64,000 nt of DNA from Lepidodermella squamata (taxonomy: Eukaryota > Animalia > Gastrotricha): the NCBI GenBank assembly GCA_047495785.1, contig JBLDXI010000023.1, positions 434,001 to 498,000 on the forward strand, written 5' to 3'. Positions 1,291 to 31,099 of this stretch are shown here, one piece after another; positions within the stretch are counted from its first letter, which is position 1; each line of letters opens with the position of its first letter. A program made the position numbers and the translations under genes. Under the pieces are notes generated by a model, which had not been told where the DNA came from, did no database searches, and saw only the letters and a list, made by a program, of their open reading frames with translations.

Positions 1291-1380
1291 CTCCTTGCTG
1301 ATATCTGGAAAATTTTACAGTCGGCTTTGTTTCGAGTGAATTTCAGCAATTTCAAACCTCTCTGTGTGCTCTGGTTAACT

Positions 1381-4300
1381 ATGAAATTGATATTTCTACT
1401 TTTTGTGGAAATATGTTTCATGGGTACGTTAATTGCTGCTAGGCAAATCGACTACGACAGCGTAAGACCTGAATACTCCTTAACTCATCCAAAATCAGTT
1501 TTTCGTTCAGGCTTTCAACCAAGCAATTGTATCGGGTCAAATTGCGACGGTTCGGCAAATGTTAAATTCCGGCCTGGCTACCGCGAATTCTGCGACCAGT
1601 CGATGGAGTTTTCGATGGGGATACTCAGGCCCAGCTATCGTGGCTGCTGTTCGAACAAATCAAAGCTACGAAATGGTTGAATTGTTACTTGAAAGCGGCG
1701 CAAATACTGAGGCGAAAGATGATGGTTACGATTTTAGCTCATTGAAAACCCCATTCCTATGGGCTGCGAGACTTGGCAGGCTGGATCTAGTGAGACTTCT
1801 CGTCGAAAAGTACAAAGCTAAAACTGATACTCGAGATAACATAAGGCAGACGGCGTTGATGGTTGCCTTGGACGGCCCGATCACCCAAGACTATCTTCGA
1901 CTAATCTACTATTTGTTACCATTCGAATCGCCTAATTCCAGAAACAGTGACGGACAAACCGCCCTTCATATACTATGCCGAGTCACAACAACGGATCCAC
2001 TGCCTTTCGCCAAATTGCTTCTCGAGCATTTCAAAATGGATGTAAATGCGCGTGATTCCCTTGGCAACACGCCGCTGCTAATTGCGGCCAGAACTGGCAA
2101 TTCTACCACTTTACTCCAGTACTTGATCGACCACGGAGCCGATCCACAGGCGAAGAATAACGAAGGCGAAAATATGTTGCTTCAAGCTTGTCAAATCAAC
2201 AAGGCCGCGTTGAGCCATATTGATTTTATCAAGTTTGCGATTGAAGTAGGTGGAAATGACGTTAATTCAAGATCGAGAGCTGCAGCTTGCGGCTATTACC
2301 TTCAATTGACTCCCGCTGGGCCACAGATTGACGACTGGGATCTCGTCGATATTATGCAGTACTTGGTTAGTAAAGGCTATGATGTCAACGTTAAGGATAG
2401 TTCTTCGGGTTTCACCGATTTAATGTCTGCAGCGTTGAATAACCGGGAGCATACTCTGGTGGCTCTACTTGATCTGGGTGCTGATGCGAATGCTACGAAT
2501 GACCTTGGCTCCACTGCGATGGACATTGCACGGAACAATGGAGATACAATTAGCATTGCCAATTTAAGAAGGCGAGGTGCTGCTTTAGGCAGGGAATTGG
2601 TTATCGGATCATCGACCAAGCGCGTGACTCAGACATCAACAAGTCCTGCCACAACTCCGGTGACTGCCATTTCAACCAATTATTTGCCATTAACGCCCAG
2701 CGATGAGACGATCGACGATGGATTGCAGCGGATGTTTGGAGCTATTTTCAAGGCGAGATCAACAACAGCGGGGAAGTCCAGCACTACTACAAGACTTGCC
2801 AGGAAACTCGTGCGGAACGAAACACAAGATGAGCTGAATTCGGTAAGTTATGGTGGATTTCGCGCCAAAAACATTAGGATGATCGGGAGTAGATTCCTAG
2901 AATATTGGTTTCTGAGCACCGCTCGCCTCTTCTCTCTCATTTGCTACCAATTACATTTTGTGATTGCGGCCTTCCCGGCACTAGCTTTCAAATACGCTCG
3001 CTCTCGAATCTAACGGAAAGATGAATGCTGAGAGTTAGCAAGCCAAGGCCTCCGCGTTCTTCCGTGGAGCTTTGATGATATTTTCAGGCTAACCCAAAGA
3101 ATCAAATTTTGAAGCAACTTCTAGAGTCTCGACGTGCAAACAAGTTCCACAGACCTAGCTTATGTGGTATGTGGTTACTCCACTGGTCTTCAGTTAGAAC
3201 TTCTCACTTCTAATAGAATAAATATTCGCACATAGTCCACTATTACCTTCAATCTTGAGATGAACCAATTGGTTGTAATCAGCTTTTAACCTTTTGGCAG
3301 AAATTTGTTGGCTATGTAACGACTGGGAACATTACTGCTGTTCGCGAAATGATTCGGCTCAATCAATCACGCGGGGACGCGCTTTTAATGAAACACCACG
3401 TTGACTACACAACCGGAGTATGCACAGACTTGAAATGGGATGAACCCATCCCAGCGGTGGCTGCTGCTTTAAGCGTCAAAAACACTCCGTCGGAAATGCT
3501 CCAAATTCTACTGGAAAACGACGGCGACGCAAATTCAATTCACCCTAATCTTGAGAAATCAGCTCTAATGCTTGCCCTGGAACAAGATCGCCTTGATCTG
3601 GTTCAATTGCTCGTCCGATTCGGAGCAGACGTTGATTTGGAAACTAATGGAAGAACGGCAATACTCGACGCTTCGTCAAAGAATCTTGAGATTGCTAGGT
3701 TCCTATTATCACAGGGGGCTTCTAAATACGTTGATCAAATCCTCTTTGAGGCTTGTCGAATCTCTAAATTTCCTGCTCTTCCAATGGTGAAATTCGCAAT
3801 CGAGGAGGCTGGAAATTCTGTTTCCAACAAGGATAACGAAAGCAGGAATGCTCTCGCAGTCGCAGCCATGTACCTGAAATCGCCAGATCGCGTTCAGGTC
3901 TACGAATATCTTCTTTCAAAAGGGGCTGATGTTCAACCCAGGATAAATTCGGCTGGATACCAAAACTATACGTTGCTACTTCTAGCTGCACGCGTCGGTA
4001 ACTTTGAATTGGCAAGATTCCTTGTCAAAACTGCCGGTGTAAGCCTTGAGGATCGCGAATCAACTGGACAAACTCCGTTAATGATCGCAGTTTCTAGAAA
4101 CAATGGCAAAACTATTGTTGATCTACTCGTCGACTCGGGCGCGGATGTAACGGCCGTTGATGAAGGTGGCAATAGCGCCTTTCTGTTGGCTTGTAAAAAC
4201 GACGACAAGACTCTCACGCGAGCGAGACGATTCACAAACTTCACAGGGGTGGATGTGAATTCGCAGAACAAATACAATGACACGTGCCTCACGCTGATTC

Positions 4301-4689
4301 GAAACAACTACGAGTTCAACGGTTTTGCCAAACGTCTCGTCCAGAACGGTTACGATATCAATCGTAAACTGCGAAGGGGAGATACTGTTTTGCATACCAT
4401 CGCAGCTCAGGGCACTGCGAACAATGTTAAAGAATTGATTGAAGCTGGATCTGATATAAATGTATTAAATGACGATGGCTACAACCCGTTAGATTTCGCA
4501 CTGCTTTACCGGAATTCGCGTACAGCAGATGCGCTGAGAAAAGCTGGAGCCGTTACAGCTAAACCAGCAATGTTGTTTTTGACAACTAAAGCGGTTCGTT
4601 CTACCACGAAAACTGCGATACAATGGAAAAGGACGACGATCGTTACCAATAATGCTAGGATGACAACAGAAGCAAATGTCAATGATTAG
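1381..4689 (+). CDS. Secreted ankyrin-repeat protein, array copy 1 (3 exons, about 933 aa)
   Basis: Exons 1381-1461 (MKLIFLLFVEICFMGTLIAARQIDYDS, hydrophobic signal peptide), 1511-2842 (ANK module A + S/T linker, ends DELNS|GTAAGT) and 3301-4689 (GGCAG|KFVGYV..., ANK module B). Both introns are GT-AG, phase 0, at the same positions as in the paralogs. Many GxTPLxxAA...LLxxGADxN ankyrin motifs. AATAAA at 4718. Confidence 0.88.
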
Positions 4690-4759
4690 GACGATGAGTC
4701 AATAATCCGAATCATTAAATAAATAGGTATGTGAAATAAAAAGGACCTATGAAAAAGGA

Positions 4760-4810
4760 CATGAAAATATATTGCCCCCCTAGATAGCATGGGGGCAATA
4801 TATTTTCATG
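4760..4810. repeat. Perfect 20-bp hairpin downstream of copy 1
   Basis: CATGAAAATATATTGCCCCC - 11 nt - GGGGGCAATATATTTTCATG. Confidence 0.8.
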
Positions 4811-5320
4811 CTCTAATGTCATTCATATGTGCCTATAGCGCCGGCCGGCGGAGGGCCTATATAAATAAAACTACGACATGCTAAAAAGGACCTAAAATGA
4901 TGGTTACGTGAAATGATTTATTTGACTATGCCATTGTGTACTATAGGGATTAAGGGAAATCTAGAGTTTCATCGCATTGTATTTTTGTATGGATTTTCAA
5001 CATGAGAATCTAAGAAGTTCAGATTTTTGGTTGAAATTTCAGTTCACCACATTATTTGGTGATTATCGTGTTTGGCTCATCAGTTAAGAATGATGCCATA
5101 CAAAGCAGCAGCGTGAATTGAACAATCGCAGAAAAACATTCTTTAAGCTGAAAAAACTAGTTGGCATACCTGCCTAAGGCTAAGCACGCACGGCAATGGA
5201 GTGCAATAGTCGTTTTTATTGCCTTATGATACCTAGAGAGCTTAAAAGTCGGCGTTGTTTCAAGGGAAGTATAGATATTTCAAACCCATCACAGAGTGTT
5301 CGAACCAGTTTTGAAGTGCT

Positions 5321-8300
5321 ATGAAATCGATTCATCTATTGTTTCTGCAAATATATTTTACGGCTGCAGAGAAGCCAACAAAGACTAATGACGGCCCACA
5401 TAATGTCAACTACGACAGCGTAAGACTTCTGAAATCTCTCAATTCCAACTCAGTTATTTTGTTCAGGCATTCAACCAAGCCGTCGAGTCAGGCCGAATCA
5501 CAATAGCTCGGCAGCTATTGAAATCTGGCCTTGTTAACGCAGATTCATCTTTCTTCTTTTACCCGGAACACCAACCATTTATCGTAAATGCAATTAGGAC
5601 GAATCAGAGCTACGAAATGGTCGACTTCTTACTACAAAACGGCGCAAATGTGGAGGCAAGAAATTGGGGCTACAATGATTCGAAGAATGCATTTCTCATG
5701 GCTGCTAGAGTAGGCAGGCTGGATTTAGCGAGACTTCTCGTTGAGAACTACAAAGCTAAAACAGACGTTCGAGCTGAGAAACGTCAAACAGCGTTGATGG
5801 TTGCCTTCGACGGCCCGGTAACACCAGATCATCTTCGGCTAGTTTACTATCTCTTACCATTCGAATCGCCCGATTATAGAAACAGGCATGGGAAAACTGC
5901 TCTTCATATACTTTGCCGAGTGACAACGACTGATCCGGTACCTTTTGCTAAATTACTTGTGGAAAAGTTCAAAATGGACGTGAATGCGAGCGATAACGAC
6001 GGCAACACGCCGTTGCTAATTGCGACCAGAACCGGCTATTCTATAGCTCTACTTCAGTACTTGATCGACCGAGGCGCCGACCCACAGACGAGAAACAACG
6101 AAGGCGAAAACATGCTGCTTCAAGCTTGTCGAATCGATCGTACGTTGGATTACATGGCCTTTATAAAGTTCGCAATTGAGGTTGGCGGTAATGACGTGAA
6201 TTCGAGGACGGAATCGGCCAGCTGCCTTTATCACCTCATGTGGCGTAATTGGCCTTATTCATTGCGTGAAAGGGAACTCCTCGAAAGTATGCGTTACTTA
6301 GTTAGCAAAGGCTTTGATTTCAACGCTAAGGATGACAATTCGGGCTATACCCCTCTAATGTCTACAGCAGCTTCGCGCTATCAAAGACAAACTCTTGTTA
6401 CCCTGCTGGATATGGGTGTTGATGTGAACGCGACGAATGACAAGGGCGAGACTGCTTTGGACATTGCAATAGCGATGAGGGAAACAATCAGCATCGGGAA
6501 TTTGAGAAGACGAGGCGCAGCTTTTGGCAGCGAATTAGGCATTGGATCATCGATTAGACGCGTAACGCTAGCGACTCTGACATCACCGAGTCCACTATAC
6601 GCGATTTCGACGGCTGCTATTGCCGCTACCAACAGGTTTCCGTTAACGCCCAGTGATGAGGATATCGATGCAGGTTTGCAGCCTATTGTTGGAGCAATTT
6701 TCAAGGCTAGATCAACTGTGGCCAAGAGATCCAGTACTGCAAGCTTTACTGCTGAGCGAAGACAGACGACAGCAAACGACAAGTCATCGTTCAATGAGCG
6801 CAACTTGGTAGGCCAAATCACTTAAATATAATGCAATATCAGCCAATGACACAATGAGCAGGGTTCAATTGTCATTACATTGCGGACTAGACCCTCCTTT
6901 CAAGCTCTCCTTTCATCTTCACTATCAAGGCTTAGATCCAAGCGTCGTGAAAGGAATTAATGCCGACTTAATTTATTAAGGCCAATCAATGCTTTGACAA
7001 TATAAATCAATCTGAATTATAACGCATGCCCATTGCGGAACGACATTGCCATCAACCATCGCTGTGTCATTGGCTGAGATACGCACTCGCATGGTAAACT
7101 TATCATCTGAGCGTTCGGTTTTAATCTAACAAATTAGGATTGGGGATTGGCAGTAAAAAAGCCATAAGCCCCAAAGCCTTAATAATGTGGATTTTGAATT
7201 GCGCGAAAAAGTAGTGTTTCTAGTTGAGACTTCCCCGGAAATTTTCAAAAGACGAGGAACAAATTCAGAAATTCCCAAAGCAATGTCGCAATATCAAAGC
7301 GGTGGAAAGCAATTGAGCAATATGTTATTGTCCTCAATGGCTTTCCACCCCAAGAACAAAAAGTTTCCGTCAAAACTCAGTAAGAACTGATTTCACATCA
7401 AATCTGTTCATTAAATGCCATGCTTCGGGTAATGTTTCGGGTCAAATTTCGAGCAGGGTTTAATTGCATCTATTTTTTCATTTTTCCGCAGAGATTTTTT
7501 GGTTATATAAAAGCTGGAAACGTAACTGCTGTTCGCCAAATGATACTATTCAATGAAGCCCGCGGAGATGCTCTTCTAATGGAATATCAGCAGTGGGAGT
7601 ATTTCGACCATTGCCGGGATCTTGGTTTCGACCAACCCATACCAGCTGTGGCTGTTGCTTTAAGCCAGAAAAACTGTTCGCTGCAACTGCTACAAGTTCT
7701 ACTCGACAAAGAAGGCGACGCAAATGCAATTCATCCAAATTCTATGAAATCCGCTCTTATGCTCGCCATCCAAAGGAATCGCCTTGATCTGATTGAATTG
7801 CTCTTCCAATACGGAGCAGATGTTGATTTGGAAGTGGATGGAAGAACGGCGATACTCGACGCTTCGTCCAAGAATCTTCAGATTGCTAGATTCCTATTAT
7901 CACAGGGAGCTTCTAAGTACGTTGATCGAATCGTTCTTGAGGCTTGTCGGATCTCCTCAATGCCTGCTCTACCCTTGGTGAATTTCACAATCGAGGAAGC
8001 TGGGAATTCTGTTTCCGACACGGATGCTGAAGGCAGGAATCCGCTAGCAGTCGCGGCTATGCACTTGAAATCGCCAGATCGACTTCAAGTCTACGAATAC
8101 CTGCTATCGAAAGGTGCTGATGTTAATAATATTATAAATTCGGCTGGATACCAAAACTATACATTGCTACATCACGCTGCATGTGTAAATGACTTCTTAT
8201 TGGCGAGATTTCTTATCAAAACTGCTGGCATCGGCCTTGAAGATCGGGAATCAACTGGCAAAACTCCATTGATGATTGCGGCTAGTTACAACGCGAGAGA

Positions 8301-11047: not shown

Positions 11048-14000
11048 ATGTTGATATATTTGATTCTTCTGGACATTTTTCTCGCGAGTGAGAAAGTTGA
11101 GGCAATCGACTATAACTGTGTAAGAATGCCAGAAATTTTTCAATTTTCTACAATTAAAGATTATGTAGGTTTTCAACCAAGCAATCATGTCAGGCCAATT
11201 TTCCGTTGTTCAGCAAATGCTGAATTCCGGTTTAGTCGACGTGAATGCAACATCCGTTTACCTAAGCTATCAAGGTCCGGCTATTGTGAATGCAGTTCGA
11301 ATAAATCAAAGCTATGAAATGGTTGAACTTCTACTGAAAACTGGTGTGAATGTCGAGGCGAGGAACGAAGGCAACGCAGATTCTAAAACGCCTTTCCTCT
11401 GGGCTGTGAGGCTTGGCAGGCTGGATCTCGTGAGGCTTCTCGTCGAAACGTACAACGCTAACACTGATGCTCGAGACTCGAACAACCAGACAGCGTTGAT
11501 GGTTGCCTTCGACGGCTCTCTCACTCAAGACTATCTTTGATTAGTCTACTACTTACTACCATTCGAATCGCCTGATTCCAGAAACAACGATGCTATGAAG
11601 ATTATTTGTTTCGCCCCACTCCTCCCAGCCGTGGCTGCAGCTTTGACTTACAATTTGAGCAATTCGAGAGATACGGCGGATGTCGCACAATTATTGTTCG
11701 AAATGCTTCAAATTCTGCTGGAAAACGATGGCGACGCAAATGCGATTCATCCTCAATTCAGGAAATCCGCTTTAATGCTCGCAGTAGCACAGTCTTGATC
11801 GCGGAAGACGTTGCCGATTTACTCATCGATTTGGGCGCTGATGTTACGGCTGTTGATAATGGTGGGAAAAATGCATTTTTGTGGGCATGTACAGGGTGTT
11901 TCATAAAAAAACCGAACTCCTATAAAAATGTACTGCTGCTGCGCGTTATCGATTTTTTTCGCGAGCGCATTTTTTTCTCCAAAAATGCACCAAAACCGCA
12001 CGGTCACCGCAAATTTTACGCATTTCTCCGAGAGAAAGCCATGCGGTAGCAGCAACAAAATTAGCGGTGTTTCAGGCACATTTTCAGTTACAGTGTGAGT
12101 TTTACACGGTGAAAACAAAATTCCTCCGGTGAATTCGCATATTTTATTACGATCCACATTTTCACCTAAAGTTTATACGAAAATTCCTTAGTGACAAGTT
12201 GTTTGCGGCTTCTCTATTTCCAAAAATTCTATTTTTGCATCAAAATCAGCAAATAAACCGCCATTTTTATTGAACGGATGGCCCCTTTCAAACGCAGCGC
12301 GACGAAGTCCCAATCCTGACCCTTCGCGCTCCGGTATCGAGCCCGACTGGGAAGCGGGTCTGCCTGGATCCCGGATTGTGCTTAATGGAATGAATTCAAA
12401 CAAATACCGCAATAGTGGACAGAGGGGGCACAGGCAAGGGCAGATGTCAATCCGAGTGCGGCGAAGTGAACTATAGGTAGTTAAAAGTGTATTTATGTGC
12501 ACTTCTAGCTCCGCCGAGCTCGGGCATCGGCATGATACTCGAGCGAAAAGAGCGATGATCAGTTCCACACTATGGCCAGATTCGGGGGTTCCACACTAGG
12601 ACAGCCCAAGTACGGCGAGAACCCAACGTTTTCCGCCGCACTCGAGCCGACACCTCGGCTGGCATGTGAGCAGTCTAACGAGATTTGTTCAAATTCGTTG
12701 AATTTACAGTGTCGCATACTGGCATGTTCTAGGGAAACCCGAGCGCGCAGTGGCAAAGCGCCGTTATCCAACCGTACACAAGCCGGCTAAAACGCGAACT
12801 GGCCGAAATCGGGCTTGGGATAGGGTCCCAACACCAAACAGCGCTAAGAGCTTTTCCATCACAGAAAATTGAAGTTGTTCCAATCAAATCCATTCTTTTG
12901 GACGGACAAGCCGCCATTCATGTATAACATGTTGGGAGTGGAAGCTATGACGCGATTGTTATCCGACGACGCTGAATCTAAGATATTATATTTCGAAACT
13001 AGGGATTATCAGAAGTATTAACAACCAATGTAGTGCTAAAACATGCCAACCAAAGACCAAACAAGATGAGGCATAAAAGGCATTTGGTCAGAATTTTTGT
13101 CGGAACGGTTCGGTCAGAACGTGCACGAGTCTACTGTGAGAATTGCGGACGCGCACTTCTTATGCATGAAAAGCAATGGGCGAATGCACCAAAGCAATTG
13201 ATTTCGTTGAGAAAAAGACGAAAGAGCATTTTCTTTAATAAGCACAATAGCAGCATATCGCGTTGTTGTCGGTCAGTAGTAACAAATTTTCGGCCGATCA
13301 CTCGTGTCTCATCAGCGGCGAATTATTACGCCGCATATGCCCAGTGCACGCGAATCCGCATGGAGATACATTGCTCTCTTTGTGGTATAGTTTTGGCAGA
13401 TGTCCGTACTCAAGATGTAAAATGAAATTGTCCGCAGAGTTTTGTCGTCAAGTTTTTGCTGACAGTTTTTTGTTTGAGCGAAGGGTTTACTATAAGTAGG
13501 GCCTTCCCCAGGTCATACGTTGATCATATATTTACCACGGGTAACTAAAGTAGATCTCATTGACCGCTAATAACACGGCGTCCATGCGTGACATCCGTCA
13601 CTCTGAGCGAATACTTGACACTGAGTCATGGAAGAATGCCAGTCGAGCTATGCTGATTTCTGTCAAATCTACCATAGCCTTTACCAAGCACGGCAGCGTA
13701 TCGGCAGCGGCATTGTGTTCTTCTCCCCTTCCGGTTTCTCGATAGAGTGTGTGCCGGCCATGATGCCTCAAAGGTTGTAGCCGAGCCTTCTCAGAGAGAT
13801 ATCCTGTGTTCGATCCCACGATTTTTGATCAGCCCGACTTGTTAAAGCACTTTAAACACGAGATGTGGATGTATTGCCGCAATTGCACGTTCAAGTTAGC
13901 GATTGTGCGCGTTCAAGTTCCTCGGTGACTTTTGCACGGCGCATGCGCATAGCGAGATAAGTAAGATCTCAGTTGACAATAATTCAAGAGCGACGCAGGT

Positions 14001-15569: not shown

Positions 15570-18121
15570 ATGCTCTTCTATTTGATTCTTCTGGAAATTT
15601 GTCGCGTAAGTGCGACAGTAATTGGAGATATCGACTATGACAGCGTAAGAACCCTAAATGATGTTCGTTTTTGACGAATCGTGATTGATTATTCAAGGCT
15701 TTCAACCGAGCTATTGTAAATGGCCAATTTTCAACCGTTCGACAGCTGTTGGAGTCCGGCGTAGTTAACATAACATCAACATCCTATTACCGCCCAAAAT
15801 ACAAAGCCTCGGCTATCGTAAATGCGGTTCGACGTAATCAAAGCTACGAAATGGTCGAATTCCTACTGGAAAATGGCGCAAATGTTGAGGAGAGGAACTG
15901 GGATGTCGAAAATAAATACAGTTATGGAAGTGATTATGCGAAAACGCCATTTCTGTGGGCTGCGAGACGTGGCAGGCTGGATCTCGTGAGACTTCTCGTC
16001 GAAAGGTTCAACGCTAAAACTGATGCTCGAGACTCGAACAACCAGACGGCGTTGATGGTCGCCTTTGACGGGCGAGTTACTCAAGACTATCTTCGATTAG
16101 TCTACTACTTACTGCCATTCGAATCGCCTGATTCCAGAAACAACAATGGACAAACTGCCCTTCATATGCTTTGCCTAGTGAAAACTACTGATCCAGTACC
16201 TTTTGCGAAATTGCTGGTGGAACTGTTGAAAATAGATGTAAATGCGACTGATAACAAAGGCACCACCCCGTTGATTGTTGCAGCAAGAACAACCTACTCC
16301 TTCCCCCTGATTCAGTACTTGATCGATCAAGGAGCTAATGTCAATGCGACCAATGACAAGGGCGAGACTGCTTTGGACATGCTGTGGCAAGATACCATTA
16401 GCCAGGAAATGTTAAGAAAACAAGGTGCTGCTTATGGCCGTGAGTTAACATGGACCGAGCGCGCGACTCGGACATCAGCTACGACAAAAACGCCTAGCAA
16501 TATTAGGCCATTGACGCCTAGCGATGAGACAATCGGCGTTGGTTTGCAGCCGATTGTTGGAGCTGTTTTCAAGACGAGATCAACTGCGGCAATGAGGTCC
16601 ACTACTACACGCTTTAGACCAGAGCGCGAAAAGCCGGCGGCATTGGAAAGATCGCAAAATCGGCTCAACTCGGTGGGTTTTTGCTTTTCAGAGCTGCCAG
16701 TTGCTCTAAGAATTGCATACTATGTTTGCATTTGTCCACAGAAATTCTTTGGTTACATAAATGCTGCAAACGTCACTGCTGTTCGCGAAATGATTCGACT
16801 CAATCAAGCCCGCGGTGATGCTCTTCTAATGGAACAGCATGACGACTACGTGGATTGCATGAATTTGCGTTACGTAGAGCCCATCCCGGCAGTTGCCTTT
16901 GCACTAAGTGTCACAGGCTCTACGCTGGAAATGATGAATTACGAGAAAGCAATATTTGAAATGCTTCAAGTTCTACTCGAAAACGATGGCGACGCGAATG
17001 CGGTTGACCCTAGGTTCGACAAATCCGCGTTATTGCTCGCAGTAGAAAGAGATCGCCTTGATCTGGTTGAATTGCTCGTCCAATATGGAGCAGATGTTGA
17101 CTGGGAATCCAATGGTAGGACGGCTATTGTCGATGCTGCGTCCAAGAATCTTGGAATCGTGAAATTCCTCTTTTCACAAGGAGCTTCTAAAAACCTGGAT
17201 CAACTCATTTTCGAGGCTTTTCAGGTCTCCTCAATCCCTGCTCTTCCGTTGGTGAAGTTCGCAATTGAGGAAGCTGGAAATTCTGTTTCTGACACGGATG
17301 CTGAAGGTAGCACTCCACTTGGAGTTGCGGCAATGTACTTGAGATCGCCAGATCGCGTTCAAGTCTATGAATATCTGGTCTCAAAAGGGGCCGACGTTAC
17401 TACCAGGTTTAACTCGGCCAGATACGGATACAAAAACTATACATTGCTACAACAAGCCGCGCGTATCAATGATTTGCAAGTTGCAAGATTTCTCATTAAC
17501 ACGGGCGGTGTCGGCCTCGAAGACCGAGAATCCACTGGAAAAACTTCATTCTTGATTGCAGCTGCAAACGGTGCGGATGACGTCGTCAATCTTCTCATTG
17601 ACTCGGGCGCAAATGTTACGGCTACTGACAATGATGGAAATAACGCTTTCTTGTTGGCTTGTGGTTGTTACGACTCGAGTTTAAGGCTCGCCAGAAAATT
17701 TGCAAACTTCACAGAAGTCGACGTCAATTCACAGAACAAAAACAACGACACGTGTCTAACTCGAATTCATTCTGACTACGAATTCAACGATTTTGCAATG
17801 TTTCTCGTGCATAAGGGGTACGATATCAACCGGAAACTGCGTGGAGGGAACACTGTACTGCATATTTTCGCAGATCGTTGGTACCCAAACAATGTTAAGG
17901 AGCTGATTGAAGCTGGAGCTGATGTTAATGCACTGAATGACGATGGCCATACCCCGCTTGATTTGGCGCTCATACGCGACAATACTCAGGCTATTTCCGC
18001 ACTAAGAGACGCTGGAGCGGTTACAGCGAAACCGACCAAGTCTCTTCAGACGACTGTCACGGCAGCTGCCGGCACTGCCGGAAGTTTCCTTCTCGGAAGC
18101 TGGCCAGGATGGAGAAATTAA
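15570..18121 (+). CDS. Secreted ankyrin-repeat protein, array copy 4 (about 809 aa; internal deletion in module A)
   Basis: Exons 15570-15644 (MLFYLILLEICRVSATVIGDIDYDS), 15698-16672 and 16742-18121. Intron 2 (16673-16741) is 69 nt, in frame and stop-free, so the ORF track reads A+B as one 790-aa ORF. Module A jumps from LIDQGA to NVNATNDKGETALD. Confidence 0.85.
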
Positions 18122-19223: not shown

Positions 19224-22200
19224 ATGAGATCCTTTAATTTAATATTTCTCGAGATATTTTTGACTGGTGTGGTTATTGATGCCAGGCAGATCGACTACGA
19301 AAGCGTATGAACTTGGTATCATTTCTCGAATATACAAGTCAAGTCTTTCCTTCAGGTTTTCTACAAAGCAATTGATACCGGTCAAATGGCAACGGTTCGG
19401 CGAATGCTGAATTCCGGCCTGGTTAATGCTAATTCCTCGAGCAATATACCGGGAATATTACCGGAATTGGGCTACAGAATCCCTCATATTGTGACTGCTG
19501 TTCGATCAAATCAAAGCTACGAAATGGTCGAATTCCTGCTGAAAAACGGCGCTAATGTCGAGGCGACGACTGCGCCAGTTGATAACAGAACGCCTTTTCT
19601 CTGTGCCGCAAGAGTAGGCAGGCTGGATCTAGCGAGACTCCTCGTTGAAAATTATAAAGCTGAAACAGATGTTCAAGACACGAAAAATCAAACGGCGCTG
19701 ATGGTAGCATTTGACGGCCCAATCACTCAAGACTATCTTCGATTAGTCTACTACTTGCTACCATTCGAATCACCTGATTCAAGAGATAGATACGGAAAAA
19801 CCGCTCTTCATTTTCTTTGTGGAGTAACAACAAGTGATCCGGTCCCATTTGCTAAATTGCTGGTGGAACAGTTCAAAATGGATGTGAATGCGAGAGATAA
19901 CAACGGCAATACCCCCTTGCTACTTGCGGCCAGAACTGGATATTCCATCGCTCTACTTCAGTACTTGATCAACCAAGGAGCTGATCCGCAGGCAAGGAAC
20001 AACGCCAGCGAAAACATGTTGCTTCAAGCTTGTCAGATCGATAGTTCTGAGTTTGTTCACTTGACCTTCATCAAGTTCGCCATTGAGGCAGGCGGCAATG
20101 ACATAAATTCGAGATCCGGAATGGCACCTTGCGCCCATTATCTCATATGGATGTTAGAAGTTTCTGAGTGGGATCTTGTCGAAATTATACGATACTTGGC
20201 TAGCAAAAGCTATGATTTCAACGTTAAAGATGGAGATCCGGGCAATACCGCTCTAATGGCAGCTGCATATTCGAACTATCGGATGCCAGCGCTTTTAGCC
20301 TTACTCGATTTAGGTGTTGATGTAAATGCGACAAACAAAAGGGGCCATACTGCTTTGGACATTGTGTTGGACCTTGATCACTGGAGAATGCTGCGAAACA
20401 TCAAAGACGATAAAATTAAAATCGGGAATTTGATAAGGCGAGGTGCTGCTTATGGCAGAGAATTACACCCCGGATCATCGACTAGGAGCGTGACTCCGAC
20501 ATCAACGAGTCGCCCTTCGACGAAAGCGGAGATTGTTACTTCAAGGAAAATATGGCCACTGACGCCTAACGACGAGGCAATCGAGGCTGGTTTGCAGCCG
20601 ATTGTTGGAGCCATTTTCAAGGCAAGGTTGACTGCAGCTACAAAGACCAGTACTACCACACGGTCCATCAAGAAAATTGGACGGAACGAAACTCAAGATG
20701 AGCTAAATTCGGTATTTTTCCGTTTAATTACATTCTTCGATTATAGGAAGCGAATATTGGAAGGCTATGTGACCGTGCATCGGCAAATCCTGGCGAGAGC
20801 TCCGGTAGTCCTCCCGGGAAACGGGTACCTTGACCCTGCCCCTTACCTTTGACATGTATTCGATTTTGACAAGATTTTGAGACTACCCAACAATTTTTAA
20901 AGTTTCTAGCCTAATATCATTATGATTCGAAGAATCCGGTTCAACTCGAACCAGTTCGAAAACTGTGCACATTACGGGGGGAAATGAGGGGTATTGTACA
21001 CATCAGTTCGGCAGGCCAAGGTGGAAAATTCCAGAAAGACCACTGGGGGACCCTTTGGTCATAATATTTGGCCCGAAAATACCCCTTAGTTCGAGAATCC
21101 TACTTCGCGCACTATATGCGCGCACTTCCCTCAGGAGGTCAATCATTCTTTTCTATGGGGGAAAGAATCAAAATTCAAAGCTGTGAAACTTTCGAATTTC
21201 TCTACAATCTAAAAGGTCCAAGATAGGGAAAATGACAATTCAAAAACCTTTGTCAAAATCGTCCATCGTAAAAAATGGGCGAATTTTTAATTTTTCTCCA
21301 AATAAAATTCCTTTGATTATTAAGAAATTCTGAAGTTTCATAGCTTGTCAATATTCTTTCCCCTTTTTGCGATGTGATTGACCTCGAGGAAGCTAAAATC
21401 AATATAAAACGTGAAATTAGAGATTAACATCGTCTCTACTCCAATTCGTTTTTTCAGAGATTTGTTGACTATGTTAAGGCTGGCAACATTACTGCTGTTC
21501 GTGACATGATTCGACTCAATCAGGCCCGCGGCGATGCTCTTCCTATCAATCACCACGAAGACTACGTACAATGCTTTGTATACGCAGAATGGGATGAACC
21601 TATTCCAGCGGTAGCTGCAGCTTTGAGCGTCAAAAACACTTCGGCAGAAATGCTGCAACTTCTACTAGAAAATGATGGCGATGCAAATGCAATCGACCCA
21701 GCGTCCACGAAATCTGCTCTAATGCTTGCCGCCGAACAAGATCGCCTAGATCTTGTTGAGCTACTTGTCCAATATGGGGCAGATGTCGACTTGGAGTTCA
21801 ATGGCAGAACAGCGATGCTCGATGCGGCATCGTCAAGTCTTGAAATCGTGAAATTCCTAATTTCGCAAGGAGCTTCTAAAAACTTGGATCGAATCATTTT
21901 CGTGGCTTGCCGGATCTCTAGCATTCCTGCTCTACCTATAGTAAAATTCGCTATAGAGAAGGCTGGAAATTCTGTTACTGACAAGGATACCGAAGGAAGG
22001 ACCCCACTTGTAGTTGCAGCCATGTATCTGAAATCGTCAGATCGCGCTCAAGTCTACGAATATCTGCTATCGAAAGGGGCTGACGTCAAAGTCAGGATGA
22101 ATTCCGCCGGATACCGAAATTATACACTGCTTCATCTAGCTGCAAGTATCGGTAACGTTGACTTGGCGAGATTCCTTATCAAAACAGCCGGTGTCGGTCT

Positions 22201-22842: not shown

Positions 22843-25481
22843 TACTTCTGTATACAATATCTTGGAGCTTTGTAGCGCATAGCCGAAAATATTCGCCTGA
22901 TGGCCAGCTGTGGAGACCTTCGACTGCGCCACAGGTCGGAATAGCGGCCTGAACCTATCTGGGTTCAACCTTCTTAATTGCATCGCAATTACGGAATAAT
23001 AAAATTTAGGGGGTCGCGGGATTTCGTCACCTCTGTATTTTCGTGACTTTTGATTCCTTGCTCAAATAAATGGATAATAAGAGATCGATTTCGCAATTAT
23101 AAAAATTCTTAAATTTTGCGAAAATCCTCCTTAAAAGAATTTCGCAACGAATCGCGTCACTGCAACAGTTCCAAACTACCCTGTATTCTGTATTGTAGCT
23201 CTATAGAATACCTGGAAAATTCAGAAATAAAAAATATCGATATGTTGAGGTATTTCTCATGATTGATTGATTTTTCAAGGTCATTACAGGGTGTCCCAGA
23301 ATTAGCGCAACTAAAGTATGCGTAATATTTTTTTTGCATCGCATTTTTTCAGTAACTTTTTAACCATGAGGAATGTTTTAAAGTGGTTTTCACCAGTCGA
23401 TAGATCTAGTCTGCGGTAAACTTTCCTCAAATTTTCATTTGAATTGGGTGCGAAAGAAAAAATTGGTGACGAAAATTCTGTCCGCGATTTTTATTGAATA
23501 CCAAAGTTTTATCAAAGTTTGTTCCAATAATTCTACCTAATTCTCCGGATATATTTTAAGGCAGCACAGTGGATTTGTGCTAACTGGCATGCTATCAGCC
23601 GCAATAGCATGGAACTTCTGCATTTCATTAATTCTGAATTAAGTGCAGTTAAGCTCGGTGCGTCCGTCGGCCTCTACTTCACTTTTCGGTAGTACCGTGA
23701 AGTTCACTTTGATCTCCAAAATCATCTTGCAGCCTTCAGTTGTTTCATGAATGAGGTTAACTGCGCGATATTTTGCCTCGGTAAAGTGGATTTGACGCAT
23801 AACTGGGTGTTCATAAAAACATGATGCCTGCTCGTATACAATGGTGAAATGTGGGTTGTAATATCTCAGAAAAACATTCCTCAAGCTGTGATATATCAAA
23901 TATGGCATACCTATCTACGCACGACAGTGCTGCTTCAGAATCACGTTGTTTATTGCTTAATGATACCTGAAAGGCTTTTTTCTCAATTAAATTTGAATAA
24001 TTCCAAAACTCACCGTGTGGTCGGAGAGTCAGTTTTGTAATCCAATGAATTCCATATTGATTATTTGTTTTCTTGGAATATATTTCGCGTGCTTGATTAT
24101 TGATGCCAGGAAGATTGATTACGACAGCGTATGACCGTTTTACGTTTTATTTTCCAAACAATAATTTACCTATTCAGGCTTTCAATCAAGCAATTGCATC
24201 TGGCCAAATTGCGACAGTTCGGCAATTATTGAATTCCGGCTTGGTTAACGCTAATTCCTCAAAACGTCTCCGCGGGGGCTATACAGGCCCGGCTATCTTA
24301 ACTGCAGTTCAAACAAACCAAAGCTACGAAATGGTTAAATTCTTGCTTGAAAACGGCGCAAATGTCGAGAGCAAAAAAGATTCGAAGACTCCGTTACTCT
24401 GGGCGGCAAGACTTGGCAGGCTGGATCTAGTGAGACTTCTCGTTGAACAGTACAAAGCTAAAACCTCCGCCAAAGACGATGGTGGTCAGACGGCGTTGAT
24501 GGTCGCCTTAAACGGCCCTTTCACCCAGGATTACCTTCGACTTATTTACTACTTGTTACCCTTTCATTCGCCGAATTACAAAAGAAATGACGGACTGACG
24601 GCACTTCATATGATTTGCCGCGTCTCAAAAACTGACCCGGTACCTTTTGCTAAATTGCTGGTGGAGCAGCCAAATATCGATGTTAATGTGAGAGACAGAG
24701 ATGGAAACACGCCTTTGCTCATCGCTGCTCAAACTGGCTATTCCACTGACTTACTCCAGTACTTGATCGACCAAGGAGCTGATCCACTGGCGAGGAACAA
24801 TGAAGGCGAAAATATGTTGATTCGAGCTTGTCAAATCGATAAGGCCGCGTTGACCCATTTAGACTTCATCAAATTTGCGGTCGAAGTAGGCGGAATTGGT
24901 GTAAATTCAAGGTCGAATCTTTCACCATGTGACTATTACCTTCAATGGCCCATCGGCGGCCAGCAGATTGACGACGGGGACCTCATCGAAATCTATCAAT
25001 ACTTGGCTGGCCAAGGCTATGATATCAACGCCAAGTATAGTAACGCTTTGACCGCTCTAATAACAGCAGCGTTGACAAATCGGGAGCAAATGCTGGTGGC
25101 ATTGCTTGATCTGGGTGCTGATGTAAATGCAACGAATAACAACGGTCAGACGGCTTTGGACTATGCGCGCAACAATCAATATGAAATAAACGTCGCGTAT
25201 TTGAGAAAACGAGGTGCCGCCACGGGCCAGGAATTGGCTGCGCGCGTTACTCGATCCACATCCACGGCGGCTGTCACTTCGAGAAGAAATTGGCTATTAA
25301 CGCCCAGCGATGAGGCGATCGACGACGGATTGCAGCGAATTGTTGGAGCTACTTTCCGAACAAGAGCAACTACAGCGACCAAGGCCAGTACTAGTACGCG
25401 GCCCGTAAAGAAAATTGAACGGAACGAAACTCAGGATGAGCTCAACTCGGTTAGTCAGCGTTTATTTCACATCTTCCTGCT

Positions 25482-28146
25482 CATAGACAACTCTATATAG
25501 ATCGGAAAGTAACGATCTTTCCGAGTAAATAAATTCACACCAAAACGTGAAAATCCGGGCACGCGACCTTTATTTTTATTCACTCATCGCCCTATCCGCC
25601 CATTGTAAAACTTTCGATTTTTTATTATTTTTAAAAATTACCAGAGAAAATCTTTCATTTCCTACTAATTTCAAAGACATATTCCGGAATGCTAGAAGCG
25701 CTTCTCTAACGAATGAGTCACGTCTCATGAGACGGTTTTTCTTCCAACTTTTAAAAATTGTCTCAAAGTTCGTCACTTTTAAGAAATATCGAGTCTTTCA
25801 GGGCGGTACATTTTTTTATTTTACGCCGAAAAATTCCGATAAAAATACTATGATCTTATTTAATTATTGCTCTGTCATCATCATCATCATCATTTTATTC
25901 GTAAATAAATATTTACAGGATTAGAAGGGCAGGCCACTTACACTAACCCGATTAGTTGTCATATAGTGTTCTATTTTTTGATATTAAGTTTCCTTTACAG
26001 TATTGCAAAAAATTTACACGATTAAGATTATTTTTAAATAAAGCATTCTTCGTAGTAAGAGGTAGGCTATCATCGAAGTCAAAAATATGAGGCGGTAAAC
26101 GATTCCATATATTTACAATACGATTTAAGAAGTAATTTTTATATATAGGCTTCGTAGGATTTTTAAAGTTATTATTAGGGTTAAGTACATTAAATCTGAA
26201 CCGATGACCACGATTATTATTTTGCACAACAATTATATTATTTTTGATGGTTGTTTGCACGGACCCGTTAATAATTTTAAATAAGAAGCAAAGGTCGTAG
26301 ATAAGGCGTCGTTCTTCGAGGGATTTAATATTCAGAATATTGAGGCGCTGTATATAATTCGGCCTAGAGTAGTTAATAGTTGAGAATCCAAGAGCACGGC
26401 GAGTGAAATTAGCTTGTACTTTCTCAATAAGATCAATTATTGTTTTCAGACAGGGTGACCATACAGTTGTGCAATATTCCAATAATGGCCTAACATATAC
26501 ACAGTAGGCCCATTTGAGGATATGAGGAGGTTGGCCTTTCAGGGCCCTGAGAATAAGGTTAGCCCGATTGTAGGCTTTAGAAATTATATCATTAATGTGA
26601 GATTTAAAATTCAACCTATCATCAACTATCAGACCCAAATCTTTATAGCTTGAGCACTTTTTAAGAGGTGAGCCACCGAGGACGTAAGTAGAATGAGGAT
26701 TTTTTGGGCCCAGGTGCAGTACGGCACACTTTTCCAGCGATAACTTTAGTTGCCAAGTTGTGATCCACTTGAATAAATTATTGAGCGATAAAGATAGGCT
26801 TAGAGGCGGAGTCATCGTCACGATAGAAAAGAACGTAAAGCTTACAATCGTCAGCGAAGAGTTTGATCGAGACACCTTTCGGTAGGGAAGAGGTGAGATC
26901 ATTTATATAGATAAGGAATAATAGAGGATCAAGTACCGAGCCTTGAGGTACCCCACTAGAAACAGAACTTTCACTACTTAACGTGCCATTAACGTTAACT
27001 TGCTGAGAACGTTCGGTAAGATAAGAAGACAGCCAATTTATAAGGTTTCCGGAGACACCTAGCGATTCAAGTTTCATAAGCAGTTTTCTGTGGCAAACAG
27101 TGTCGAAAGCTTTAGCTAGGTCAATATATACTATATCCACACAATTCGAACTTTCAATGGCGAAAGACCAGTCGAGGAAACATTCTAACATTTGCGTTGC
27201 AGTGGATTTAAGCCTCATGAAGCCATGTTGTTCAGCTGAAATAATATTATGGTAAAGAAGATAGTCTAATAAGTTATTACGAATAATAGTTTCCATTATT
27301 CTACATGGCGTAGGAGTAAGCGAGATTGGCCTGTAATCAGCAGGATTTTTTGAGTTTCCTTTTTTTGGAATGGGCGTGACGAAGGCTTTTTTCCAAGACT
27401 TAGGAACGTGACCTTGAGACAATGAGAGGGAGAAAATATGAGTCAGAGGTTTAGCTATAGAAGAGCCTAATTTTTTGAAGAAGACAGTAGGAAGGCCATC
27501 TGGGCATATCGAATGAGAATCAGACAGGTTTAGAATAATTTCAAGAGTAGAGTCTTCGTTAAAATTCAAAGATGCGAGACAGTCATTAATACTACTCGTA
27601 AATTGAGGGGTCAAATTATCATCAAGAGTGAAGACAGAGGAGAATTGGTCATTTAGAGCCTCGGCTTTTTCGCGGTTTTCAACACATAGAACACCAGAGC
27701 TATTAAGAAGAGGAGGAATTTTTGAGTGATCGCCTAATTTAGAATTTACAAAGCTGTACAAAGCTGTCCAACGATATTAAACTTGAGCAAATCGGATTTT
27801 GTTTGAATTCTGCGAACGCGTGATAGTACTCTTTCAGCATTTCAGCAATTTTGTAGCTATTTTTAGCTCGCTCAGATTATTATCACCCGAACGCGTACGT
27901 GACAATTTTGCGGAATTCAAACAAATTCTGATTTGCTCCGTTCTCTATGGCTTCTAGTATTCCGGAATATTTTTTTGAAATTAGTAGGAAATGAAAGGTT
28001 TTCTCTGGGAAAATTTTTGAAAATAAACTAAAATGGGCGGATAGGGCGATGAGTGAATAATATAAAGGTCTCTTGCCCACTTTTTGATGTGAATTTATTT
28101 ACTATAGGAAGATCGTTACTTTCCGATGTGTATAGAGTTGTCTATG
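25482..28146. mobile_element. hAT-like non-autonomous DNA element in intron 2 of copy 6 (hosts a LINE)
   Basis: Long imperfect TIRs starting CATAGACAACTCTATA and ending TATAGAGTTGTCTATG. Flanks TTCCTGCT / TTCATGCC match at 6 of 8 (degenerate 8-bp TSD). Confidence 0.8.
25875..27765 (-). mobile_element. 5'-truncated CR1/L2/Jockey-group LINE (reverse transcriptase + C-terminal region, one frameshift)
   Basis: ORF 26778-27761 has the RT motifs [28 protein letters not shown] and FADD. ORF 25952-26902 continues (WQLKLSLEKC, YKDLG, VRPLLEYC) in another frame. The 3' end is AATAAA followed by an (ATG)6 tail. Confidence 0.93.
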
Positions 28147-30118
28147 TTCATGCCTTACGACATACGTAACAATAACTTATCCGAACAGTGAGGACGGGAA
28201 CGAAAGGGGTAGGTAGGGGGTATTTCAGACTAGAAAAACCTCAAATGCATTGGCATCATTCGTAATTTCATTTCATTTTCACCAGAAATTTGTTACCTAT
28301 GTAAAAACTGGGAATGTTTCCGCTGTTCGCGAGATGATTCGACTCAATCAAGCTCGCGGTGACGCTCTTTTTATGGAACAACATAGCGAATACGACGCGT
28401 CAGCATGCGCCATCTGGCTTTGGGAGCAACCCATCCCTGCGGTGGCTGCCGCTTTCGGCGTTTCAAGACCTTCGTCAGAAATTCTTCAACTTCTACTCGA
28501 AAACGATGGAGATGCTAATGCGATTCATCCACAGTTCAAAAAATCAGCTCTTATGCTTGCCGTTGAACAAGATCGCCTTGATCTGATCGAGCTACTTGTC
28601 CAATACGGAGCAGACGTTGATTTGGAAGTGAATGGAAGAACGGCGATTCTCGACGCTGTTTCCAAGAATCTCGAAATCGTGCAATACCTCATTTCGCAGG
28701 GAGCTTCAAAAAACGTGGATAAAATCATTTTCGAAGCTTGCCGGATCACCTCAGTGCCGGCTCTTCCCATGGTGAATTTAACCATCGAGGAAGCTGGAAA
28801 TTTTGTTACCGACAAGGATACTGAAGGCAGGACCCCTTTTGCGGTGGCAGCCATGTACTTGAAATCGCCAGATCGCGTTCAAGTTTACGAATATCTACTG
28901 TCAAAAGGGGCCGATGTTAATGTCAGGATAAATTCAACCGGATACCGAAGTTATACCCTGCTACATCATGCAGCACGTGTAAATGACTCTGTCTTGGGGA
29001 AATTTCTAATCCAAACGGCCGGCGTTGGCATTGAAGAACGCGAATCAACTGGCAAAACTCCGCTGATGATTGCTGCTTCCAGCAACAATGCCAAAACCCG
29101 GACAAAAAAGTTTGCGTAAATTAACATTGTAAATTCCTGTATTTTGGGGTATTTTGCAGTTTATTTGGGTATTTTCATGTAAGCAGATCAGGAACCAGCT
29201 CAGCGATCCGGAATTCAGCGTTGTAAACCAGGGTTTTTCGTTTTTCGGCCGAAAAACTTCATGGAAATTCGTGTGAACCATGAAATTCGGTCTTGTAAAC
29301 TCATGGATTTTCGTCCTTCAGTTATTTCTTCGATGTATTTCAATGGAAGCTGGACGATTTTTCGACTGGAATATCCTCACATCATTTTACATCATGGAAA
29401 AGACGTTGTAATCTCATGTAGGAAGATCGATTGAATAAAAAGTAAATAAATTTTTAAAATTCAGTCGATATAACCCTAATTTTACTGCTCGAATTTTCAA
29501 GTACGAGCCGCAATTGACATTACATGAAATTACACGATCGGAAATTTCACGGAATTTCAAGGAAACTTCGGTTCATTGTATTTCTTATTATTGTATTGTA
29601 TTTCTTGTATTCTGGAGAAATCTGAGTAGTTACACTAAAATACACAAAGGAAAAAATAAGATATACTGGCAATTTTGAGCTCAAAAATCACCGTGTAAAT
29701 TCATGTAGACTGGTTGTGTAAATAACGATTCGATAAATAGCAAATTTTTCACAAATTTCAGGTAAGTTTCGGAGGAAAACAGAATTTAGGTGATTTCAAT
29801 TACGCCAAAATGTTAAAAATTCGGGCGAGTTGAATCTTAGTTGATTTCGGCTCATTTGAACGCTGCTGTTAAATCGTGTGCTGAGAGCACAAGTAATCAG
29901 ACGGCTCAAAATCGTAGTCAATTATTGGGACGATTTTCGAAAAATGACATATACGAGTGCGCCGATTTTTATATGATTTGTATATTTCAGGTGAAATCCG
30001 CGTCAATTCAGTTAATTTGGTTACAAAGTCAGCTGGTTTTCAAAACTGACTGAAAAACTCATAAATTTTCTCTGATTTGCTGTTTCACGTTTGAATTTTT
30101 CGAAAATATCAGAAGTTC

Positions 30119-31099
30119 GCTCAATTCCGGGCCCCCCTTAGTTTCGTGCGGCCCCCAACATTAATTGCGCAACCAGAGGGTAAAAATGGACTTGTGCGCG
30201 AGCGCTAAGTCGAAAATCTTCAAAATTTCACAGCCGCGCGCGCCTATGTCAAAAGGCTAGTTTTGACTTTTCGTGCGGTTTTTATACCAAAATAAAGGTC
30301 AGACAATTCTCTATCGAATAGATATAGTCTACTCGCGTGAAAAAATTAATAGGAAACAGTTTTACGTGCACACCAAATTTCTGCAACGAAGTGCGCACGC
30401 TCTCACCCTGCGCGCGAAATCTAAGGTGCACGTAAAACTTTTTCCCATTAATTTTTTCACGCGAGAACACCATATTCAATCGATAGAGAATTGTCTGAAT
30501 TTTTTTTTGGTATAAAAACCGACGCGATATTTGAAAGTAATCCTTTAACATCTTTGCGCGCGGTTTTAAATTCGTTAAAAATCATGACTCTGCAAATTTA
30601 ACCTCGCGCGACTAAAGCGCGCTGGCTAAGTCATGATTTTTAACGAATTTAAAACCGCGCGCAAAGATGTTAAAGGATTACTTTCAAATATCGCGTCGGT
30701 TTTTATACCAAAAAATAATTTAGACAATTCTCTATCGATTGAATATGGTGTTCTCGCGTGAAAAAATTAATGGGAAAAAGTTTTACGTGCACCTTAGATT
30801 TCGCGCGCAGGGTGAGAGCGTGCGCACTTCGTTGCAGAAATTTGGTGTGCACGTAAAACTGTTTCCTATTAATTTTTTCACGCGAGAACATCATATTGAC
30901 TCGATAGAGAATCGTCCGACCTACATTTTGGTATAAAAACCGCCTACATTATAAAAAGTAGCCTTTTGACATTAGCGCGCGCGGCCCTAAAATTATTAAA
31001 AACTTCGACTTGGCGCTCGCGCACAAGTCCACTTTTACCTTCTGATTGCGCAATTAATGTTGGGGGCCGCACGAAACTAAGGGGGGCCCGGAATTGAGC
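30119..31099. mobile_element. Foldback/MULE-like palindromic element (981 bp) nested in the CMC-like element
   Basis: Inverted arms of about 470 bp (GCTCAATTCCGGGCCCCCCTTAG...CTAAGGGGGGCCCGGAATTGAGC). Perfect 9-bp TSD CAGAAGTTC at 30110-30118 and 31100-31108. Confidence 0.9.

Follow-up and report, generated by a model that had tools for sequence, protein, structure and literature searches.

A 64,000-nucleotide stretch of the genome of the gastrotrich Lepidodermella squamata (assembly GCA_047495785.1, contig JBLDXI010000023.1, positions 434,001 to 498,000; here called the window) harbours a tandem array of about ten ankyrin-repeat genes. Each gene consists of a signal-peptide-like exon, an ankyrin module A followed by a linker, and an ankyrin module B. 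In module A, two loops vary in sequence and length between conserved framework blocks; they change at roughly the neutral rate, and their composition departs from that expected under neutral drift. In the reading favoured here, the array would encode a family of secreted, two-domain ankyrin proteins, in which Tyr-rich fingers act as paralogue-specific contact elements that turn over almost neutrally under a constraint on composition. Our confidence in this reading is evenly poised between right and wrong.

The loops were compared in a MAFFT alignment of the nine alignable copies of module A. Loop 1 comprises 9–15 residues between ...NANS and PAIV..., and loop 2 comprises 4–16 residues between ...ANVEA and KTPF...; both exceed the canonical ankyrin β-turn, by 0–10 residues. 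Their positions, taken from the alignment together with any further evidence named, are as follows; AF2 stands for AlphaFold2.

1592–1630, + strand: loop 1 of copy 1 (ATSRWSFRWGYSG), an extended finger that links the N-cap to repeat 1; alignment columns 26–40, AF2 strands 27–28 and 39–40.
1715–1744, + strand: loop 2 of copy 1 (KDDGYDFSSL), an extended finger that links repeat 1 to repeat 2; alignment columns 69–91, AF2 coil.
5548–5574, + strand: loop 1 of copy 2 (SFFFYPEHQ).
5659–5682, + strand: loop 2 of copy 2 (RNWGYNDS).
11250–11276, + strand: loop 1 of copy 3, a truncated copy (also from the translation).
11361–11384, + strand: loop 2 of copy 3 (RNEGNADS).
15779–15808, + strand: loop 1 of copy 4 (TSYYRPKYKA).
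15893–15940, + strand: loop 2 of copy 4 (16 residues, the longest).
19437–19481, + strand: loop 1 of copy 5 (15 residues; short tandem duplication ataccgg.../attaccgg...).
19566–19586, + strand: loop 2 of copy 5.
24259–24288, + strand: loop 1 of copy 6.
24373–24384, + strand: loop 2 of copy 6 (KKDS; canonical finger length).
35986–36012, + strand: loop 1 of copy 7 (AFKYYPERQ).
36097–36120, + strand: loop 2 of copy 7 (RNEGYNDS).
41521–41559, + strand: loop 1 of copy 8.
41644–41688, + strand: loop 2 of copy 8 (15 residues).
52157–52186, + strand: loop 1 of copy 9 (ISYYRPGRRA); AF2 β-hairpin E27–31/E34–37.
52271–52291, + strand: loop 2 of copy 9 (also from AF2).

The initial annotation had described loops that vary in sequence and length within a conserved framework, and this description holds: all of the peptide strings that it listed are present, and its coordinates for copy 1 are exact. 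The further statement that they differ in nearly every copy is overstated. The loops are variable, but loop 2 is nearly identical in copies 2, 3 and 7 (RN[WE]G[YN][NA]DS), and recognisable loop-1 motifs recur, namely YYP in copies 2 and 7, SYYRP in copies 4 and 9, and GY.G in copies 1, 8 and 6. Averaged over alignment columns, entropy reaches 1.90 in loop 1 and 1.69 in loop 2, compared with 1.09 in the linker and 0.68 in the framework; the loops are therefore also more variable than the linkers, as that annotation implied. Among all 8-column segments of the ankyrin domain they take ranks 1 and 4 for variability, with the helix–helix turns of repeats 9 and 7 at ranks 2 and 3. Length varies in only two of the nine inter-repeat fingers, the first and the second (17–23 and 13–19 residues between helices); each of the remaining seven has a fixed length of 12–15 residues. 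The ratio of non-synonymous to synonymous divergence (dN/dS, ω) is 0.15–0.36 in fingers 3–6, 8 and 9. Two further variable regions lie towards the C-terminal end of module A; in copy 1 these are:

2270–2338, + strand: third variable region, which spans finger 7, helix 1 of repeat 7 (containing a conserved Cys) and the helix–helix turn of that repeat (entropy 1.5–1.8; ω about 1 for the whole region, 1.8 within the turn).
2528–2548, + strand: fourth variable region, the repeat-9 helix–helix turn (3–13 residues among copies; second most variable segment, ω 1.3).

The fold of module A is that of the ankyrin repeat superfamily (PF00023, PF12796), with Pfam Ank_2 matches in the array at E = 1.5e-32 to 2.3e-63. 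AF2 models of copies 9 and 1 have a predicted local distance difference test score (pLDDT) of 79 and 78, respectively, and contain an N-cap and nine ankyrin repeats, with 10 helix pairs. Foldseek retrieves ankyrin structures with a probability of 1.0, the best matches being fusions of designed ankyrin repeat proteins (DARPins), AnkB and the Espin ankyrin domain; a latrotoxin is also among the structural matches. In the model of copy 9, loop 1 is a β-hairpin (E27–31, E34–37); in that of copy 1 its base strands are paired, and its tip has a pLDDT below 50. Loop 2 is a coil that joins helix 2 of repeat 1 to helix 1 of repeat 2. The models thus support the earlier placement of the loops at ankyrin β-hairpin fingers, and specifically their identity as inter-repeat fingers 1 and 2 of module A, which are neighbours.

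Composition sets these two fingers apart. The null distribution was obtained by simulating codon evolution at ω = 1 on the estimated tree with the real gap pattern. Tyr accounts for 12.2% of loop residues, against 2.9–4.3% expected (P <= 0.001); Tyr, Trp and Phe together reach 20% against 6–10%, and Tyr, Gly, Ser and Arg 44% against 22–27%, while Leu, Ile, Val, Met and Cys are depleted to 7% against 27–30% (P <= 0.002 in each of these cases). The Tyr and aromatic excess is limited to fingers 1 and 2; the other fingers contain 3.6% Tyr and 6% Tyr, Trp and Phe, and the linkers 0.8% Tyr. The enrichment in Tyr, Trp, Phe, Arg, Gly and Ser noted in the initial annotation is therefore real, even when phylogeny is taken into account. 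Pure neutral drift of the loops is rejected on composition, which means that selection keeps the character of both loops while their sequence and length turn over.

Whether selection also favours change in the loops was addressed with codon models, fitted with our own likelihood program (GY94, F3x4 codon frequencies, IQ-TREE topology). Pairwise framework dS among module-A copies is 0.63–1.46 at ω of about 0.2; the copies are old paralogues. In a partition model with a shared synonymous rate, ω is 0.24 for the framework, 0.49 for the linker, 1.11 for loops 1 and 2 together, and 0.98 for the third variable region. The framework value, at dS of 0.7–1.4, indicates that the genes are functional. 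Under the same assumption, loop 1 alone has ω of 1.39–1.61, with twice the log-likelihood difference (2ΔlnL) from ω = 1 at 4.1–10.2 across three alignments and the six intact copies, and loop 2 alone has 0.86–1.12. When loops 1 and 2 and the third region are combined and given their own rate multiplier, they evolve at 1.6–1.9 times the framework rate with ω of 0.52–0.57 (2ΔlnL gain 8.8–15.4); with an own rate, ω is 0.85–1.0 for loop 1 and 0.15–0.26 for loop 2. Loop-specific codon frequencies with the rate fixed at 1 bring loop 1 to ω of 1.24, which is not significant.

The site models disagree with one another. M1a versus M2a yields 2ΔlnL of 4.96 (p about 0.08), M7 versus M8 12.4, and M8 versus M8a 8.24 (p about 0.002), with about 5% of sites at ω of about 2.2; in the M7, M8 and M8a fits, branch lengths were fixed up to one scale and eight beta classes were used. 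Under M8, 13 sites have P > 0.5 and none has P >= 0.95. In alignment columns, they lie in loop 1 (33, 39), loop 2 (84), the tips of fingers 3 and 5 (123, 197), finger 7 (269, 270), the repeat-7 turn (281, 287), the repeat-9 turn (357, 368), and the C-cap and linker (383, 394). An analysis with site-specific synonymous rates, in the manner of fixed effects likelihood and fast unconstrained Bayesian approximation (FEL/FUBAR-like), finds no significant site; its best columns are 39 and 123 (likelihood ratio about 5, uncorrected), and loop means are 1.8–2.1 for the synonymous rate α and 0.75–1.1 for the non-synonymous rate β. In the most closely related pairs, the ratio of loop dN to framework dS is 0.35–0.7. 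Taken together, the loops change at about the neutral rate. The apparent loop ω above 1 hinges on the assumption of a uniform synonymous rate and on the uncertain alignment of indel-rich, near-saturated sequence; alignment uncertainty and near-saturated dS are both known to inflate ω. Diversifying selection, which the initial annotation had proposed, is thus neither demonstrated nor refuted by the codon tests: ω above 1 does not hold up across models, and once synonymous rates may vary, none of the sites is significant.

The variation itself looks like the product of ordinary short tandem duplications. Insertions contain such duplications, for example cgatgg...cgatgg in loop 1 of copy 1, and loop 2 of copies 4 and 8 carries repeated agt-tat and ttt/ttc units. 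No donor cassettes or templates for the loops are found in the window, where the best matches are either paralogous loops or at chance level, differing at 5 or more of 24 nt. The reverse transcriptase in the window belongs to an intronic long interspersed nuclear element (LINE). The array lacks the nearby donor cassettes or template repeats of receptors diversified somatically or from templates (variable lymphocyte receptor cassettes, diversity-generating retroelements, immunoglobulin gene conversion), and no dedicated diversification mechanism is apparent. The initial annotation had noted that all indels preserve the reading frame, but this is expected wherever the downstream part is under purifying selection, and is therefore uninformative about diversifying selection. 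Recent gene conversion was considered as an explanation for the conserved framework and rejected, given framework dS of 0.7–1.4 and segment trees that are largely congruent in the ankyrin part; the framework is conserved by purifying selection. The label 'CDR-like', which likens the loops to the complementarity-determining regions of antibodies, consequently overstates what is a slow germline divergence of old paralogues.

Among public sequencing runs, a single one containing this locus (X1) was found, and no RNA run. X1 differs from window positions 1300–7299 by about 1–3% in single-copy stretches, with 1031 differences in all, and includes many paralogous pieces. It also contains pieces that are 90–95% like genes 1 and 2 (contigs 90–99%), while paralogues in the window are at most 85% alike; these closer pieces point to divergent haplotypes or further family members. 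Apparent joints in X1 were dismissed as in-window paralogues pieced together; in one example, 14 inserted letters at 5655 > 1744 spell loop 2 of copy 6.

The gene model is given here for the array and for gene 1.

1381–64000, + strand: tandem array of about 10 same-strand genes (tblastn map, list of open reading frames (ORFs), Pfam Ank families, splice sites).
1381–1461, + strand: exon 1, encoding a signal-peptide-like N-terminus (MKLIFLLFVEICFMGTLIAARQIDYDS), with a GTAAGA donor after it (hydrophobic core, Kyte–Doolittle 11-residue mean 2.9).
1462–1510, + strand: intron 1, 49 nt, phase 0, GT-AG (same position, 46–56 nt, in 9/10 copies; in gene 4 the splice-site scan selected an earlier donor).
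1511–2842, + strand: exon 2, module A (N-cap and 9 ankyrin repeats) and Ser/Thr-rich linker (Pfam Ank_2 1.5e-32; AF2; Foldseek).
2687–2764 and equivalents, + strand: conserved 26-residue linker motif, PLTPSDE.ID.GLQ...GAIFKARST / PLTPSDEAID.GLQPIVGAIFKARST (alignment; low-confidence predicted helix).
2843–3300, + strand: intron 2, GTAAGT...CAG (splice-site scan).
3301–4689, + strand: exon 3, ankyrin module B (Pfam Ank_2 2.4e-43; alignment of 7 B modules).

The first exon is recognisable in all ten copies by its hydrophobic core, conserved IDYDS end and GT donor. It begins with M and 0–2 polar or charged residues, which are followed by a core of 10–15 hydrophobic residues (Kyte–Doolittle 1.8–2.9) and a polar end. 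From these features, the proteins of the family appear to be secreted. The linker is Ser/Thr-rich, mucin-like and variable outside its conserved motif; it is probably glycosylated, and the motif may mark a site of processing or may dock into an ankyrin groove. An NQS N-glycosylation sequon is invariant in the repeat-1 turn (1655–1666 and equivalents) of all nine alignable copies, and a NAT sequon near repeat 8 is conserved in 6/7 copies; both would be compatible with passage through the secretory pathway. In module B, the first finger is variable and length-polymorphic around a conserved [DE]Y, with one invariant Cys (3388–3445; 7580–7640, 16830–16880 and 54030–54080 in other genes). Structurally, it corresponds in position to loop 1 in module A, so that a variable N-terminal finger is present in both ankyrin domains.

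In the mechanism proposed, a lineage-specific tandem family would evolve by birth and death. Its loops would turn over at close to the neutral rate, through ordinary point substitutions and through short tandem duplications or deletions, while being held by selection rich in Tyr, Gly, Ser and Arg and free of aliphatics and Cys, with a few anchor residues kept. The neighbouring, exposed and aromatic-rich fingers would then most likely serve as ligand contacts, and loop divergence would give each old paralogue its own binding preference, which would amount to a germline-encoded repertoire.

Several observations weigh against this proposal. The helix1–helix2 turns of repeats 7–9, on the edge opposite the fingers, are as variable as the loops, so that high variability by itself does not mark a binding site, and the earlier expectation that variable sites lie on one face is not supported; faces were assigned from the repeat register and established ankyrin architecture. 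Any exposed loop is expected to be poor in aliphatic residues. Conserved anchor positions contribute some of the Tyr excess, and these Tyr anchors may be structural (stabilising the hairpin) rather than binding. The array includes 3–4 degenerate copies. The signal-peptide call is based on hydrophobicity and conservation, and the splicing in the gene model on conservation among copies. One alternative is that the loops are functionally unimportant, being relaxed, insertion-tolerant surface loops of an old gene family that drift and slip and are filtered only against hydrophobics, stops and frameshifts. Consistent with this idea, their ω is about 1 or lower, synonymous divergence is elevated, indels derive from slippage, similar hot spots occur at the other edge of the domain, AF2 models the loop tips with low confidence, and the array includes degenerate copies. 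We nevertheless consider relaxed loops unlikely: Tyr is enriched 3–4-fold and aromatics 2–3-fold in precisely these two fingers and not in other fingers or linkers, the anchors GY and YYP have been kept despite dS of about 1, and an extended, variable first finger is found in both modules.

A further alternative, put forward in the initial annotation, is that diversifying selection acts on the fingers and favours amino-acid change in loops 1–2. The array would then be an ankyrin-based repertoire for recognition, caught in an arms race with variable ligands (pathogens, non-self or host targets, for instance). The shared-dS result for loop 1 (ω 1.4–1.6) and the M8/M8a comparison point this way, as do the positions of the 13 M8 sites (3 in loops 1–2 and 7 in fingers), the paratope-like composition and the signal-peptide-like N-terminus. 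Against these stand the non-significant M1a/M2a comparison, the lack of any site at P 0.95, a loop synonymous divergence inflated 1.6–1.9-fold (free-rate ω 0.5–1.0), β/α below 1 in the loops, the low ratios in the closest pairs, and the uncertain alignment at near-saturated dS; on balance, an arms race seems rather doubtful, if a little less so than relaxed loops. The proteins might also not be secreted at all, with exon 1 being a membrane anchor or mis-assigned and the products acting as intracellular ankyrin adaptors. Eukaryotic ankyrin domains characterised so far are nearly all cytosolic or nuclear, typically intracellular adaptors; furthermore, the junction of exons 1 and 2 is a prediction from genomic sequence, cysteines are few and a disulphide-rich domain is absent. 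This reading is nonetheless quite improbable, as the exon 1 ORF with its hydrophobic core, IDYDS end and canonical donor is kept in 10/10 copies despite dS of about 1, and the mucin-like linker and conserved NQS and NAT sequons also argue for an extracellular product.

Extracellular ankyrin binders are known mainly from protein engineering and pathogen effectors. The closest engineered parallel is provided by DARPins, which have the same fold and likewise carry their variable elements at inter-repeat β-turn fingers; the Tyr, Ser, Gly and Arg bias of the loops is typical of such binding surfaces. DARPins, however, are substituted at fixed β-turn and helix-1 positions of every internal repeat at constant length, whereas variation in module A consists mainly in the extension and turnover of two N-terminal fingers, the helix-1 positions that DARPins randomise are conserved, and hot spots also occur on the opposite edge; the family is, moreover, natural, multigene and germline-encoded. 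A DARPin-like surface would have variable β-turn and helix-1 positions in consecutive repeats, forming one contiguous concave paratope; module A combines adjacent, variable fingers 1 and 2 with conserved helix-1 positions, fixed-length fingers 3–6, 8 and 9, and hot spots in the helix–helix turns of repeats 7–9.

Among eukaryotes, the nearest precedent is provided by secreted ankyrin-repeat effectors of the oomycete Phytophthora sojae, which are also lineage-expanded and equipped with signal peptides (PMC11139960). The window differs in being animal-like, with a LINE of the apurinic-endonuclease-type reverse transcriptase kind in the neighbourhood and a Cys-loop-like gene. The portion of PMC11139960 on which this comparison draws does not describe a two-module layout with a mucin-like linker. 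Database searches gave only generic ankyrin similarity, at no more than about 40% local identity, and the two families were not compared directly.

Variable lymphocyte receptors of lampreys and hagfish, FREPs (fibrinogen-related proteins) and 185/333 proteins are likewise encoded at multigene loci proposed for recognition, with a solenoid scaffold and variable ligand-contact loops. Variable lymphocyte receptors are built from leucine-rich repeats by somatic assembly from donor cassettes; the array instead contains complete germline genes of old divergence (dS about 1), with no cassettes in the window. Ankyrin effectors of Wolbachia, Legionella, poxviruses and polydnaviruses, and latrotoxins, also form large, fast-evolving ankyrin families that act outside the cytosol of the producer. 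These are delivered by bacterial secretion systems, viral expression in host cells or venom glands, share at most about 30–40% local identity with the family, and in no case have the layout of signal peptide, ankyrin module, mucin-like linker and ankyrin module.

Word-indexed searches of 5.8 billion clustered proteins, with the 476-residue ORF and a 790-residue read-through ORF spanning both modules, returned only generic multi-ankyrin proteins at no more than 31% identity. An exhaustive phmmer search of 1.84 billion representatives likewise gave generic ankyrin proteins only, at no more than 40% identity over short stretches. The family therefore appears to be lineage-specific, with no close relative in the protein sets searched, and no paper on an extracellular ankyrin recognition family in animals was found in the literature.

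If secretion and binding hold, nature too would have used the ankyrin scaffold extracellularly for recognition, and the family would offer natural loop-extension designs for binder engineering. A bolder extension, which we think improbable, is an animal extracellular germline recognition repertoire on the ankyrin fold, with dozens of secreted proteins in tandem arrays using Tyr-rich finger paratopes for immunity, allorecognition or symbiont handling. Were this true, it would be the natural counterpart of DARPins and a new recognition scaffold beside immunoglobulin, leucine-rich-repeat and lectin folds. A conserved framework with variable loops in old paralogues mimics hypervariability, yet fits near-neutral turnover under a composition constraint, and caution is warranted.

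A tblastn search of the window with one copy identifies ten module-A and about 10 module-B segments, all on the + strand and in the order A-B-A-B. Module A starts at 1514, 5470, 11172, 15701, 19359, 24181, 35908, 41443, 52079 and 59771/61984 (tblastn, translations). It is full-length in six copies and truncated in copy 3, and in copies 4 and 8 it has lost internal segments through in-frame deletion. Copy 4 (15701–16672) is without repeats 6–8, its fingers being joined neatly at QGA|NVNATND, and copy 8 (41443–42381) is without the stretch from repeat 6 to the linker. Both deletions look like unequal recombination among ankyrin repeats, which alters repeat number. Copy 10 (59771–59905 and 61984–63201) is divergent, with 43% identity and a different linker, and its repeat 1 is interrupted by an additional intron about 2 kb long. 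The module B of this final gene begins at 63269 and extends beyond the window end.

The array is interrupted by the LINE, one further insertion and a few unrelated ORFs. Gene 6 is disrupted by the LINE in intron 2 (25450–28285; reverse transcriptase ORFs 25952–27761, minus strand), and an insertion about 5.5 kb long (29084–34658) divides its module B. Counterparts of intron 2 in other copies range from 69 to 2836 nt, and that of gene 4 is in frame. Introns in the window are generally short, with GT-AG ends and T-rich acceptors, and window GC content is about 42%. Rfam and tRNA scans of the window gave no matches. At 48904–50418, an intronless 504-residue ORF with a Ser/Thr-rich N-terminal part has a weak match to a Cys-loop ligand-binding domain (Pfam E = 6e-8); a word-indexed search of the 5.8 billion proteins detected no relative of it. 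A small ORF at 56566–56967, which carries no family assignment, begins like a signal peptide and contains repeats of a Cys-rich motif (C..G..C / N.C). Upstream of the genes, non-coding blocks are conserved among paralogues (1140–1320; about 250 nt 5' of exon 1 elsewhere, e.g. 51700–51900), including TTATTGCTTAATGATACCTGAAA, ACGCACGA and CATTCCT.AAGCTGAAAAA; their retention despite dS of about 1 suggests a promoter or regulatory module common to the whole array.

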